64,000 nt of DNA, from the sequence record MF498774.1; one strand, written 5' to 3'. Numbering within the stretch: the stretch's first letter is position 1; each line of letters begins with the position of its first letter. The notes below the pieces were generated by a model. It did no database searches and was not told where the DNA came from. It worked only from the letters and a program-made list of their open reading frames with translations. Made by a program: the position numbers and the translations under genes. Of this stretch, positions 4,601 through 22,995 are shown piece after piece.

Positions 4601-5373
4601 ACGTTTACGGTTGTCTTTGTTACTGGGTTATTACCATCAAGATCATATGTGGTAATAGTATCACCGTTTCTGGCGTATTTTGGTAGTTGGATCTTAATTC
4701 CACCAGTATATCTGGTTTCTCTCATCAACTGGTCACCAACAATGGATTTATAATATCCACCGGCTGGATACGACTTGTTGCTGATAAATGATTTGTTTAC
4801 ATCACCAGCGTATTCAGTTTGAACAAACCATTCGCTACCATTCAAAATGAAGTAGTTGGATGAATTTTTGGCTGTGATCTTATAAGAAGCCAAACCGGAA
4901 ATAGTTCTTCCATTACCAGAAACATCTATGGTATAATCGTGAAGATTAGAACCATTATCTCTGATAACAATAACGTCCCCATTAAGGGCATTCGTTGGTA
5001 AGGTAAATGTTACATCACTACTTATGGTCTGTGCCAAAATATGATCACCGGCAGAAAGATTTGTCAATGCTGGTGCATTAGTCGTAACCAGTTTCCAACT
5101 TGGGTCTGTACGTACTGGTTTCCATTTTACTGGGTTGAATGCCTCTGGTGAGGTTATATCAACTTGACTTAGGTATATGCGGTTATCATAGATAACAGCA
5201 AAGTTTTTGTCGTATGTTCTAGTTGCGTCATATAGTTGGATTGTGTTTTCTTGTACAAAGAAATCGACACTCACACCATCCATCTTTGAGTTAATATCGG
5301 GATAACCGACGTTAACTATTTTTTGACCAGCGGCATCTAAGCCATCGGTAACGCGAAACGGAATTGAAGACAT
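1681..5373 (-). CDS. gp34: Long tail fibre proximal subunit gp34 (1230 aa)
   Basis: N-terminus FRVTDGLDAAGQKIVNV, many ATxxxxG(L/I)xxxAT...(V/I)TP fibre repeats, C-terminal IRANPTTKSVDFVW; divergent from rnh as in T4. Confidence 0.95.
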   Translation of the reverse strand: MSSIPFRVTDGLDAAGQKIVNVGYPDINSKMDGVSVDFFVQENTIQLYDATRTYDKNFAVIYDNRIYLSQVDITSPEAFNPVKWKPVRTDPSWKLVTTNAPALTNLSAGDHILAQTISSDVTFTLPTNALNGDVIVIRDNGSNLHDYTIDVSGNGRTISGLASYKITAKNSSNYFILNGSEWFVQTEYAGDVNKSFISNKSYPAGGYYKSIVGDQLMRETRYTGGIKIQLPKYARNGDTITTYDLDGNNPVTKTTVNVHPGSSHNIIVEYGSTPMKTVVFDSTDWGMFVFDSTLNAWRVFDADNLSRWKSVKTSTYLGQPNDRLVVYTETPSTVNITFPRDAARGDSFFIDTRYMKRGSTLTLNIDTSSTNDFFVPDGNTLMNPRISAYRDFLANMESNTVKTQSFDIQNRGEQWEFVYFTNALGSGKDVWSVVTMSEIPYRVDRNVPEFYGMAAIASQSSVNKNKEEITTGQNPDCEDFVTAETLANKTASTVRRGITRYASNGESKAVSGNLSDEAWSGVAISPFLLNDRLSTTTMRGLLKVATQSQANAQSGSGENWAQVAVTPSTLNGRVATESMTGLSALVSANGTKPTTRTTPGTGVYDYNDHSKVITPKTLFEKNATEFSQGMVYIANQGEVNTGTADTATGALVVTATTLEGRQATASLTGLSRAATSTEVLSNTPPAGDNVHVSAKGLVSRTATETRWGLSETATQAEVDAGTLHDKWFVTPKTFGNWLARERLTVFDTSGLRTVGNIWEGQSFNIVIPTESQRGTARIATQNEVNDMTGTANDEIIVTPKKLSARLATTTQTGLSQIATQSEVDTGTNNTKYLTPLTALTSSRNSAGYRMTDTRYGVGITAILSNNNSANSVFEGNDILGSTRALTGYAHGDVLVSPRGLNTALANFLPLKAVAVSASAMEVGGNRIPSTDWVRRTIAQTITGEMTFTANPSIEKIRPYFYLNETSTTSHVSMIQWKRQGSNAFLDLGVNTIDGPLILNAMDENSRYYRIFTVERDGNAIFTNQVQNGGQNPTSGNHLVRFAYAEERYVRGPGNFAETITGNKTFVNTTYFKNSGVQNIWMGNTSKSGITINANESLNIGSLGGLQIRPNGLSSPSNTSSFESNGDLKVNAQVKIGSALPIDPDDAIRKDYLDSVIDDMNTTSGSRVFKGGDTMTGELIINSVKALTVNGDSNLNGTTTVNKLRIAVGNGEFLEIRANPTTKSVDFVWIS

Positions 5374-5414
5374 TTACAAGATCCTCTTGTGTTAGAATTA
5401 GTTATCATATATTA

Positions 5415-5421
5415 TTTAGGG
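5415..5421 (-). promoter_or_regulatory. Late promoter (CCCTAAATA) for gene 34
   Basis: TATTTAG(GG) on the plus strand ~40 nt upstream of the gene 34 start; the same motif recurs before most structural genes. Confidence 0.75.
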
Positions 5422-5431
5422 AGATTAACAG

Positions 5432-6367
5432 ATGTCATTATTTGACAATCCAGATCTTGGGTTAACTGGCGAACCCAATATTCAACTAATAGATTATAGC
5501 CAAATAGTAATTTCAAATTTGATGTATTACTTCAAACCAGAAGATATCATCACACCAAAAATCATTCGTAATATCATCATCGATGCATTACGTTCTCACG
5601 TTTTGAAAAACAAAAATGATTATCCAAATATCATTATTGCGATAGATTCCGTTGATGGATATTGGAGACGGGACGTGGCTCCGTATTATAAAAAGAGTCG
5701 AATCGCTAAAAAAGAAGAAAGTGGTTACGATTGGAAAGCTATTGGCGAAGCAATGACCGAAGTTCGGAAAGAAATTGCGCAGTACCTTCCATATAAGACT
5801 ATTTATGTTCCGGGTGCAGAAGCAGATGATATTTTTGGTGTTTTGATTAAATACTTCAAAGAAAAAGACCCAGATGTTAAGATACACATAACGTCAGCAG
5901 ATGGAGACTTTACCCAGCTTCAAAGGTGGAAAGGTGTTCGTCAATGGAACCCAATGCATAAGAAATGGGTTAAACCTGAACATGGTAGCGCACAACGGGA
6001 TCTCCTTTATAAAATTGTAAAGGGGGACACCAAGGACTCCATCGCAAATATCTACTCCCCGTCAGATCTTATTTATAAGAATAGTCTTCTGGAAAAAGAA
6101 GACCGAGTGAGACAGAAGTCAATTCGAAAAGAATTGTTGGCAAGTGTATTTACTGCCAAGGAACCAAAATCACTTTTTGAAGGTGATGTATTGGAAAGAT
6201 TTGAAGAAAACGAAAAATTAATTGATTTTAACTTCATACCGGATGATATTTCTGCTAAAATACTGACAGAATATCATTCTTTCAAAGTTCCAGCTCGTGG
6301 TAAAATCACAAATTACTTTATCTCTTCTGGTATGTCAGAAATGATCGGAAAAGAATCTGAATTTTAA
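5432..6367 (+). CDS. rnh: T4-type RNase H / 5'-3' exonuclease
   Basis: LIDYSQI, YWRRDVAPYYKKSR, EADD, SADGDFTQL and KGDTKDSIANI FEN-family motifs. Confidence 0.95.
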   Translation: MSLFDNPDLGLTGEPNIQLIDYSQIVISNLMYYFKPEDIITPKIIRNIIIDALRSHVLKNKNDYPNIIIAIDSVDGYWRRDVAPYYKKSRIAKKEESGYDWKAIGEAMTEVRKEIAQYLPYKTIYVPGAEADDIFGVLIKYFKEKDPDVKIHITSADGDFTQLQRWKGVRQWNPMHKKWVKPEHGSAQRDLLYKIVKGDTKDSIANIYSPSDLIYKNSLLEKEDRVRQKSIRKELLASVFTAKEPKSLFEGDVLERFEENEKLIDFNFIPDDISAKILTEYHSFKVPARGKITNYFISSGMSEMIGKESEF

Positions 6368-21881: not shown

Positions 21882-21906
21882 AGCCATCCTACGGGGTGGC
21901 TTTTTT
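21882..21906 (+). terminator. Terminator after inh (same sequence as 1649..1674)
   Basis: AGCCATCC-TACG-GGGTGGC-TTTTTT. Confidence 0.85.
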
Positions 21907-21957: not shown

Positions 21958-22179
21958 ATGGAATACAATTTCATCGAAGTTAATGAAAATACTTTTGTTC
22001 TTACTGGATATTTCGGTTCTTATAATTTGATTGAAAGGTGGAAAAGACTTGAAGAAGATGACCATTTGATGATCGAGAAGATAAAGGAATATTTGGAGAG
22101 GGGAGATATTGTGGTTGTACATGATGTACAAGAAGATTTATTCGTTAAACTAGATGGAGATAAATTTTACGTTTTTTGA
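21958..22179 (+). CDS. Hypothetical protein (73 aa)
   Basis: AAGGG SD, upstream late promoter, downstream terminator. Confidence 0.7.
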   Translation: MEYNFIEVNENTFVLTGYFGSYNLIERWKRLEEDDHLMIEKIKEYLERGDIVVVHDVQEDLFVKLDGDKFYVF

Positions 22180-22226: not shown

Positions 22227-22250
22227 AGGTGGTCGAGAGATCACCTTTTT
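22227..22250 (+). terminator. Terminator with GNRA loop
   Basis: AGGTGGTC-GAGA-GATCACCT-TTTT. Confidence 0.7.
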
Positions 22251-22283
22251 GTATATTTTATATACAAAATAAAATAGTTTCAC

Positions 22284-22312
22284 TTGCAATCAAAGTATAA
22301 AATCTCTATAAG
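22284..22312 (+). promoter_or_regulatory. Sigma70-type promoter upstream of the structured element and SLOG gene
   Basis: TTGCAA-17 nt-TATAAG with an AT-rich UP region. Confidence 0.55.
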
Positions 22313-22319
22313 TATTTAT

Positions 22320-22416
22320 ATAGAAGATCTATAATTAGAAAGAGTGTGAGCGAAGCGAACAGGCGGCTACGCCGTCTCACTACGTTCGAGATCTATTTAT
22401 TTATAATGCTATTTAG
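22320..22416. other. Structured non-coding element (GC-rich mini-hairpin cluster between AGATCTAT direct repeats)
   Basis: GCGAAGC (22350-56), GGCG-GCTA-CGCC (22362-73), GTGAG/CTCAC (22346-50/22376-80), CGAAC/GTTCG (22356-60/22384-88) and AGATCTAT at 22325 and 22389, inside very AT-rich DNA. Confidence 0.7.
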
Positions 22417-22434
22417 GTGTGTTAAAATATCATC

Positions 22435-22995
22435 ATGAAAAGGAAAATTGTAACTCTTATAGGAACCAGATATCCTAACGAAGAGTATAAACAGTTGATG
22501 ATAAGAATTGGAAAAGCTTTTTCTGATCGTGGTTATGGTGCTAGATCTGGTGGTGCCATTGGTTCTGATACGCTTTTCCTAACCGAATATGACCCAGCAT
22601 TAACCGTTGTATATCGTCCTGATGATAGACCCGGTTGTGTTAATGTCAAAAATCATGAAAACTATTATGAATTTGAATTGCTTGCTTCCCGTGTTCATGG
22701 GTCTGGTATTGGATGGGAATTTATGCCAATTGGTCACCAAGAATTACACGCTAGGAACGTTCCTCAAGTTATGGGATTAAATCTCAAGTCTTATTCTGAC
22801 TTAGTTGTATTTTGTGCGGAAGAATCGATACATGGTACTGTATCTGGTGGAACTGCTACTGCGGTTAAAATAGCAAGAAGCCTAAATATACCTACCCTAA
22901 ACATTATGAACCCAGTTCAAAGATCAAAACTTTGTAAATGGTTGGGTATTGATGATATACCAGTATTAGAAAAGGTTGACATTTTCAATCTCTAA
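22435..22995 (+). CDS. SLOG-superfamily (DprA/Smf/YpsA-like Rossmann) protein
   Basis: TLIGTR, SGGAIGSD, HARN..V.G and SGGTATAVKIAR...IP motifs. Confidence 0.8.
   Translation: MKRKIVTLIGTRYPNEEYKQLMIRIGKAFSDRGYGARSGGAIGSDTLFLTEYDPALTVVYRPDDRPGCVNVKNHENYYEFELLASRVHGSGIGWEFMPIGHQELHARNVPQVMGLNLKSYSDLVVFCAEESIHGTVSGGTATAVKIARSLNIPTLNIMNPVQRSKLCKWLGIDDIPVLEKVDIFNL

Follow-up and report, generated by a model that had tools for sequence, protein, structure and literature searches.

What kind of element lies in the short non-coding stretch in front of the DprA-like/SLOG gene of Aeromonas phage AS-yj (MF498774.1; Straboviridae, Emmerichvirinae, Ceceduovirus, T4-type)? The stretch, at positions 22,284–22,416, belongs to the window that we analyzed (nt 1–64000 of the AS-yj genome); a 3-kb query around it matches the AS-yj record at 100% and with identical coordinates. 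A preliminary description had taken it for a structured non-coding element with a promoter reading into it, serving as an origin, as a source of late antisense RNA or as a ligand-sensing 5' untranslated region (5'UTR). We compared it with relatives from the CC2 group, ZPAH1/Aswh_1 and phage 65/avDM6, a small comparative set whose members are closely related. The stretch is a structured non-coding element that the coding annotation does not explain, and nt 22275–22396 form one of six dispersed, near-identical intergenic copies in the AS-yj genome. Each copy is a non-coding unit of about 115–120 bp, a promoter followed by a small folded GC-rich module (referred to below as the cassette and its core).

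Six copies at fixed sites

A 121-nt query taken from the cassette has 3–8 matches in each of 21 Aeromonas phage records and none outside them, and the 12-mers of the cassette are the most repeated 12-mers of the AS-yj genome. For the 35-nt core, shuffled sequences gave zero chance matches. A covariance model made from seven cores (home-made, with rough E-values) finds exactly six cores in AS-yj, six in ZPAH1 and zero stand-alone cores, and it separates the strands at the flagged copy (64.1 bits vs 13.6 bits on the other strand). The copies have a common left boundary (TAGTTTCA) and are found at the following places in AS-yj:

c1 (the flagged copy), 22.3 kb, plus strand
c2, 64.48–64.60 kb, minus strand
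c3, 227.9 kb, minus strand
c4, 186.9 kb, plus strand
c5, 138.1 kb, minus strand
c6, 94.7 kb, minus strand

Only c1 is within the window; the next nearest copy, c2, begins 484 nt beyond the window end. The preliminary description was right about a structured, non-coding element with a promoter reading in, and it missed the six-copy, concertedly evolving repeat, which takes the whole genome and the relatives to see. Homology searches in the relatives show the cassette conserved at the same six syntenic sites, and the family is specific to Emmerichvirinae (the CC2- and 65-like T4-type Aeromonas phages). In IMG/VR, the true relatives are phage 65, AS-zj and CC2 only, and the core motif there is confined to the CC2 group.

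Positional orthologues exist in ZPAH1 for all six AS-yj copies and in phage 65 for at least four. One shared site precedes the DprA-like gene, one follows the long-tail-fiber gene, one separates gp54 from the baseplate hub, one is close to the SLT/alc genes, and two are early-region positions; two of the six cassettes lie in late-gene regions. The promoter modules are 0.91–0.92 identical within a genome as compared to 0.78–0.87 between AS-yj and phage 65 orthologues, and all copies of a genome have genome-specific diagnostic blocks in common; the copies thus evolve in concert. Between AS-yj and ZPAH1, the cassettes are 0.88–0.96 identical at five of the six orthologous sites (0.87 at c3), while the flanking DNA is ~75% identical; the constraint on the cassette exceeds that on coding DNA.

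In c6, in ZP4 (the ZPAH1 orthologue of c1) and in ZP5, the core runs opposite to the promoter, and in ZP6 it is the promoter module that is flipped; where the core is inverted at orthologous sites, it is the exact reverse complement. Core and promoter module are separable in phage 65, which has other hairpins at one locus (L281) and a truncated core at another (L018). At the former (L281 about 5365–5560, around 102 kb), two convergent promoter modules stand ~50 nt apart with two different GC hairpins between them. In AP1 (MT713136.1; L304 3001–3117, 134.1 kb), synteny with AS-yj ends exactly at the left edge of a c1-type cassette, and the genes upstream of the break are early-region genes like those at AS-yj 97–99.4 kb; the break is either a recombination at the repeat or an assembly join. 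The AS-zj genome in IMG/VR (contig 2974605215; L014, L197, L220, L221) contains single Ns and short deletions inside several cassettes, suggesting assembly trouble, heterogeneity or real recombination at the repeat, and AsSzw2 (L011) has a 21-nt deletion in its c1 copy.

The cassette is absent from Rfam and from the literature that we searched. Rfam at the gathering threshold gave nothing across the window and, at E up to 10, only noise across 22250–22450; ARAGORN found neither a tRNA nor a tmRNA in the window. Literature searches by sequence words returned unrelated primers only, and a review of T4-family genomes contains no mention of such a repeat.

All of the motifs first pointed out in the stretch are present where they had been placed:

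22325–32 and 22389–96, plus strand: AGATCTAT direct repeats (sequence match)
22389–22396, plus strand: the second AGATCTAT, right edge of the cassette in CC2-group c1–c3 only (absent from c4–c6, phage 65 and ZPAH1)
22346–50 and 22376–80, plus strand: GTGAG and CTCAC, proposed to form a stem
22356–60 and 22384–88, plus strand: CGAAC and GTTCG, proposed to pair as loop and downstream strand
around 22362–73, plus strand: GGCG/CGCC, inner hairpin as first drawn
22313–20 and 22398–405, minus strand: TATAAATA boxes (sequence match)

Taken singly, these motifs are within chance. GCGAAGC is found six times in the window vs 1.9 expected (six or more in 4/100 shuffles), AGATCTAT five times vs 2.4 expected, and TATAAATA ten times vs 6.3 expected (as high in 18/100 shuffles), and a simple sigma-70 promoter scan does not exceed its shuffles. 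Relative to shuffles, the RNA fold of the core has z = -1.60 (plus strand) and -0.88 (minus strand), and that of a 77–81-nt stretch z = -2.2 to -2.3; folding with DNA parameters gave z = -0.44 and -0.67. The case from a single sequence would be weak; the element is real because it is repeated and conserved.

Promoter module and folded core

The left part of the cassette holds these features:

22275–22342, plus strand: AT-rich promoter module, near-identical in all six AS-yj copies
22284–22312, plus strand: putative sigma-70-type promoter Pa (-35 TTGCAA at 22284–89, 17-nt spacer, -10 TATAAG at 22307–12)
22330–22335, plus strand: perfect TATAAT without a usable -35, at about +10 to +16 of Pa (~11 nt past the likely start)

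The module is ~85% A+T and quasi-palindromic, with a partial dyad centered near 22314/15 and four TATA boxes that start at 22296, 22307, 22319 and 22330 (spacing 11–12 nt). The sigma-70-type promoter described as entering from the left (22284–312) is there, judged by its TTGCAA-17-TATAAG sequence; phage 65 has TATAAT as the -10 of Pa, and transcription from Pa would start near 22319–21. The ordinary early promoters of AS-yj read TTGAC(A)-17-(TG)n-GATACT, some with a CTTGCA-type -35, and Pa is plausibly a sigma-70 promoter of a distinct, unusually conserved kind. The TATAAT at 22330–35, invariant in nearly all copies from all genera, may act as a second start or as a site of sigma-dependent pausing. 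Such a -10-like element in the initially transcribed region is known from lambda PR' pausing, and conserved RNA hairpins just past early promoters, in more than one copy per phage, from lambda nut and HK022 put. The likeness is a functional analogy only, as the cassette has no similarity to boxA/boxB or put. We know of no N- or Q-like protein in T4-type phages.

Right past the -10 of early promoters of the TTGAC(A)-17-GATACT kind (AS-yj 85–160 kb, minus-strand gaps), (T)ATCGAAAC(G)AGA or TTGTTGAAAC recurs, which may be a conserved start-site or leader signal.

The 43 nt downstream of the promoter module are 63% G+C and contain two hairpins:

22346–22388, plus strand: GC-rich core of 43 nt (segment A UGAGCG-N-AGCGAAC, a variable GC hairpin, segment B CUCACU-N-CGUUCG)
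22350–22356, plus strand: P2, mini-hairpin GC-GAA-GC with a GNA triloop and a compensatory change in the second pair
22364–22374, plus strand: P3, hairpin CGGC-UAC-GCCG, in which 22364–67 pair with 22371–74

Pairs were counted over 14 distinct cores in a model-fitted alignment, which leans towards the structure used in fitting. P2 and P3 are supported by compensatory changes. The GC-GAA-GC mini-hairpin noticed at the outset proves to be kept across copies as a GNA-triloop stem, with C-G as the second pair in 10 sequences and U-A in 4; the loop is GAA or GUA in most copies and a tetraloop in two, and in the phage 65 copy L289 the stem has 3 bp. Of the four pairs of P3, three change on both sides (CGCC/GGCG, CCC/GGG, CGC/GCG and CGCG/CGCG across copies). 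The comparative data put this inner stem in the register CGGC/GCCG and not GGCG/CGCC. The covariation score of P2 and P3 together is 0.221 vs 0.073 in shuffles, a value reached by 0/500 of them. L289 is too diverged for the model, and it keeps both hairpins with wholly different stems.

Mini-hairpins of the d(GCGAAGC) type are very stable in DNA. The exact heptamer is present at 22350–56, and the relatives keep a 2- or 3-pair stem with mostly a G-N-A loop. Phage 65, however, has GUGAAAC, and two copies have tetraloops, so it is the stem that is conserved and not the hyper-stable DNA sequence itself.

For the helices of the proposed H-type pseudoknot, the same covariation check gave no compensatory changes. 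In the model-fitted alignment, GUGA/UCAC is 92.9% paired and GAAC/GUUC 94.6% paired with zero both-side changes, and L017 and L289 each break one pair of helix S2. A nested imperfect hairpin (the minimum-energy fold) fits the pair counts as well as the pseudoknot does. The three substitutions of L017 suit the nested fold and break one pseudoknot pair, while the double change of the phage 65 type agrees with the mini-hairpin and not with the nested fold; both observations are accommodated by a three-way junction. These data are consistent with the pseudoknot topology. The variable N of segment A and that of segment B do not covary, and an AGATCU/AGAUCU closing helix is found in three CC2-group copies only. 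A hammerhead (stem II followed by GAA, mapped by eye) fails on the missing CUGANGA strand, and resemblances of the core to attC, CIRCE and the T-loop did not hold on inspection.

A proposed promoter with a structured leader, and its alternatives

Our preferred reading, which we hold tentatively and at somewhat less than even confidence, is that the cassette is a portable early promoter joined to a structured leader, similar to a PeSL yet distinct from it, whose copies are kept alike by mutual recombination. We infer an active promoter and RNA as the active form. Host RNA polymerase with sigma-70 would start at Pa (TTGCAA-17-TATAAG) near 22320, pass the consensus -10-like TATAAT, and then transcribe the 43-nt module, in which two small hairpins would form in a quasi-palindromic frame. 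The transcript would thus open with a compact structured leader that acts through its structure, by shielding the 5' end against decay, by offering a site for processing or protein binding, or by doing both. Copy c1 would serve the DprA-like/RyR genes, and the other five copies other genes or short RNAs; recombination between copies would keep them alike, and the copies could be recombination break-points.

The surroundings of several copies argue for this reading. A Shine–Dalgarno (SD) sequence and an ATG follow the core in the direction of the promoter at c3 and c5 (also at L018 and ZP1 in the relatives), c6 is directed at a gene ~90 nt downstream of it, and both c1 and c3 come directly after terminators, as does the phage 65 copy L012. 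The CTTGCA -35 is also found in other early promoters. Downstream of c3, and probably driven by it, is an unannotated conserved 39-aa hydrophobic open reading frame (ORF) with an SD (MNSKTFSVTIPLIPF...; AS-yj 227688–227807, minus strand; L005 13688–13807, minus strand), which converges on a SegE-type GIY-YIG homing endonuclease gene (counterparts ST65p047 and ZPAH1_orf00235). Taken together, the genes downstream of the phage copies do not belong to one family.

The PeSL cassettes of the T4-type phages RB49/phi1, PST and nt-1 are a precedent for dispersed, recombining promoter-plus-stem-loop modules (Arbiol 2010, PMC2839356; Comeau 2014, PMC4122927). Both kinds of cassette are dispersed, conserved intergenic units of ~100 bp with a sigma-70-type promoter and a GC stem-loop. 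PeSLs mediate recombination (indels, mini-circles) and are linked with rearrangement; the AS-yj family may do likewise, given its concerted evolution, the AP1 break and the Ns in AS-zj. The sigma-70-like early promoter with AT-rich upstream DNA that marks a PeSL is matched here by TTGCAA-17-TATAAG, on sequence grounds only. In PeSLs, however, the stem-loop lies ahead of an AT-rich UP element and the promoter and serves as a terminator or attenuator of incoming transcription (PMC2839356), whereas the AS-yj core is downstream, in the transcript, and has no U tract. PeSLs are also numerous and lie between ORFans in hyperplastic regions, whereas AS-yj has six cassettes at fixed syntenic sites, and the AS-yj core has conserved non-stem sequence and flips orientation.

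The proposed leader role resembles that of 5' stabilizer hairpins and processing signals (the ompA leader, the T4 gene 32 leader pseudoknot and the T7 RNase III sites), which are likewise small conserved structures near mRNA ends that act by shape; they have no sequence similarity to the AS-yj core, which is shorter than an RNase III substrate. T7 has about ten related RNase III sites spread through its genome.

Several observations weigh against a promoter with a structured leader. Pa does not stand out in the simple promoter scan, and the fold energy of the core is ordinary. Copies c2 and c4 and their ZPAH1 orthologues oppose the local gene flow and have no ORF to serve. The core is antisense to the promoter in c6, ZP4, ZP5 and ZP6, which suits a structure-only role but also a role at the DNA level. 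Core segments that do not pair are nevertheless conserved from genus to genus, and unrelated prokaryotes have them too, without a promoter; a mere stabilizer hairpin leaves this unexplained. The last point concerns c1 itself, whose neighborhood is as follows:

21958–22179, plus strand: small ORF of 73 aa, left neighbor of the cassette
22227–22246, plus strand: intrinsic terminator of the 73-aa ORF (8-bp stem, then a T run), closing the preceding transcription unit just before the cassette
22420–28 (layout 22420–22437), plus strand: extended -10 TG-n-TAAAAT (TTTATA-17-TAAAAT with TG); the DprA-like ATG begins 7 nt past the -10
22435–22995, plus strand: DprA-like/SLOG gene, right neighbor of the cassette

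The RyR-domain gene comes after the DprA-like/SLOG gene, and the block converges on gene 24. The DprA-like/SLOG gene is without an SD, and the same extended -10 layout is found in phage 65 (TGGTATAAT) and ZPAH1 (TGTTAGAAT). Given the missing SD and a conserved extended -10 lying 7 nt before the ATG, its mRNA may be leaderless, with a start independent of the cassette, and c1 may not be the functional promoter of a gene that seems to have a leaderless promoter of its own.

Among the alternatives, the one that survives best, although we consider it unlikely, makes the core RNA the product: the cassettes would be small-RNA genes or leaders, the pseudoknot or three-way-junction motif would bind a protein or host factor or act as a catalyst, and the downstream genes would be incidental. 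Consistent with it, c2 and ZP2 consist of promoter, core and a terminator hairpin, in this order and without an ORF, bases beyond the proven stems are conserved between genera (UGAG, CGAAC, CUCACU, CGUUCG), and no Rfam family matches. It is also favored by look-alikes elsewhere. A strict pattern of 25 fixed bases has four matches in 185,579 prokaryote genomes (Halosimplex, two Planctomycetota and a Patescibacteria metagenome-assembled genome), as compared to an estimated ~0.01 chance matches, and the covariance model picks similar architectures in a few unrelated metagenome loci preselected for segment B, among the matches listed. A metagenome scan with a loose core pattern gave at least 120 matches, with no phage relative among the matches listed. 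The four prokaryote matches each have a different inner hairpin, extra flanking helices and no promoter; they lie between or just upstream of genes of unrelated function, and their neighbors share nothing (S6/SSB, BON/Sir2, an ABC ATPase, a glycosidase). Rfam gave nothing at these loci. They fold as strong long hairpins (z near -5 for L301 and L303, the two folded with shuffles) and look like plain long intergenic hairpins, which speaks against the core RNA as product, as do the lack of covariation support for P1 and S2 and the antisense position of half of the ZPAH1 cores and one AS-yj core.

The phage and prokaryote cores may reflect homology, convergence on a common partner, or a palindromic repeat family. 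We see only a modest chance that the 43-nt core is a structured nucleic-acid motif across domains and new to description, that is, a pseudoknot or three-way junction with a specific biochemical role (a protein-recognition module, a ribozyme or a single-stranded DNA signal), deployed from six dedicated phage promoters.

Other occurrences of segment B were seen along the way. Six metagenome contigs (L072, L113, L063, L064, L124, L153) contain an unrelated recurrent repeat (GATTGCCGCG-CTCACTTCGTTCG-CTCGCAATGAC) that includes the segment B 13-mer, and in L093 and L094 the 13-mer is in the loop of a GGCGCC hairpin within long palindromes. The Patescibacteria contig (L303 1906–1928, plus strand) has a second partial segment B ~600 nt from the full motif, after the ssb gene, which hints at a dispersed repeat in this genome.

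A somewhat smaller probability goes to the core being a selfish or neutral quasi-palindrome, similar to repetitive extragenic palindromic (REP) elements or miniature inverted-repeat transposable elements, that sits beside a strong promoter and is carried, flipped and homogenized by recombination or template switching. Quasi-palindromes flip by strand switching, and the exact reverse-complement inversions at orthologous sites, the separability of core and promoter module in phage 65 (L281, L018), and the similar intergenic hairpins of unrelated prokaryotes, one locus with a second partial copy, would all fit. The positions, however, are fixed across genera, with no copy at a new site and no stand-alone core; there are only six copies, with neither a target-site duplication nor a terminal inverted repeat, and the compensatory changes and the conservation above coding DNA indicate selection. 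REP elements, the bacterial interspersed mosaic elements (BIMEs) and RAYT-mobilized REPINs are also imperfect intergenic palindromes in either orientation, with related hairpins in many genomes, but REPs come in hundreds, with a conserved GTAG start and a RAYT gene, in contrast to six copies at fixed sites in AS-yj. The minus strand of CC2-type cores contains two GTAGs, one of which is replaced by GAAG in cores of the ZPAH1 type, and the analogy to REPs that had been drawn from GTAG fails because GTAG is not conserved in the latter. No RAYT is annotated in AS-yj, though no search aimed at RAYT was made.

Equally doubtful is a late antisense RNA that would run from a late promoter through the core and the early promoter, for late shut-off or as a complementary core RNA. 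The boxes concerned are:

26575–81 (minus strand), 24710–16 (minus strand), 21046–52 (plus strand), 21913–19 (plus strand) and 22992–98 (plus strand): examples of (C)CTAAATA late boxes, found upstream of gp23, gp24, inh, the RyR gene and many other late genes
22410–22417 (CTAAATA from 22416 to 22410), minus strand: putative late-promoter-type box CCTAAATA, directed leftward into the core and followed by no ORF

CTAAATA is found 30 times in the window vs 14.3 expected (reached by 0/100 shuffles) and, usually with a C before it, lies 20–40 nt before gp23, gp24, gp20 and other late genes. The late promoter box of AS-yj is (C)CTAAATA, not the TATAAATA of T4; the same substitution was noted for Aeromonas phage Aeh1 in a review (PMC2988020). 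TATAAATA is not enriched, and 6 of its 20 copies in the genome simply belong to the cassette. The two TATAAATA boxes (22313–20 and 22398–405) had been read as late promoters; being T4-type boxes, they are not of the late promoter type of AS-yj. What is left of the antisense proposal is the 22410–17 box, a real match to the late consensus that reads into the core and is kept at the corresponding position in phage 65 (L017) and ZPAH1 (ZP4) despite diverged surroundings, with no convincing minus-strand ORF to its left. This box is found at the c1 site only and cannot explain the cassette family. It also shares bases with the spacer of the putative leaderless promoter and could be conserved for that reason, and no minus-strand terminator was seen.

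Less probable still, in our judgment, are origins of the T4 oriF/oriG type, where the promoter transcript would form an R-loop, the AT-rich module would melt, and hairpins of the displaced strand would hold the opening for helicase loading. T4 oriG lies beside the long-tail-fiber genes. The cassettes likewise number about six per genome at conserved positions, one of them beside the long-tail-fiber genes, and in each the promoter is next to a ~85% A+T quasi-palindrome with phased TATA boxes and then hairpin-forming DNA; the stability of d(GCGAAGC)-type mini-hairpins in DNA and the orientation independence would also suit a DNA-level role. Like oriF (uvsY) and oriG (34), the cassette joins a promoter to an easily opened or structured region. 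The T4 origins, however, need a MotA-dependent middle promoter and have an AT-rich unwinding element downstream, whereas the cassette has no TGCTT MotA box at -30 (its -35 region is TTGCAATCA), and the DNA downstream of its promoter is GC-rich (63% G+C) and no unwinding element, the AT-rich part being the promoter module itself. To our knowledge, the T4 origins share no repeated sequence, in contrast to six near-identical copies in AS-yj. Folding with DNA parameters was unremarkable, and several copies look like ordinary 5'UTRs with SD and ATG. AsiA is present in AS-yj; MotA was not found at the T4-syntenic place (next to gene 52), and no genome-wide MotA search was made.

A riboswitch that senses a ligand and controls the SLOG/DprA-like gene, suggested by its place before that gene and its small junction-like fold, is very improbable and we reject it, because the same cassette stands before genes of unrelated kinds or before no gene, the ZPAH1 orthologue has its core in the opposite orientation, and the SD-less gene has its own extended -10 at leaderless distance, to which add the absence of an expression platform overlapping an SD and of any Rfam match.

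A near-same terminator hairpin (AGCCATCC-TACG-GGGTGGCT) closes both the inh gene (21882–21901) and the gp54 gene (AS-yj about 64450–64480) and is a second small repeated regulatory element.

Meaning for the Aeromonas phages

Should our preferred reading prove right, the CC2- and 65-like Aeromonas phages would have a small regulon of six identical promoter-leader cassettes, which selection holds more tightly than the neighboring genes. This would offer direct access to early gene control and to genome shuffling in phages of a group that is used against fish pathogens, and the PeSL idea of mobile regulatory cassettes would come to cover another architecture. The six copies, with their natural inversions and compensatory variants, are a ready-made mutational series. 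The core itself may be a new small structured motif, as its conserved non-stem sequence recurs in distant prokaryotes.

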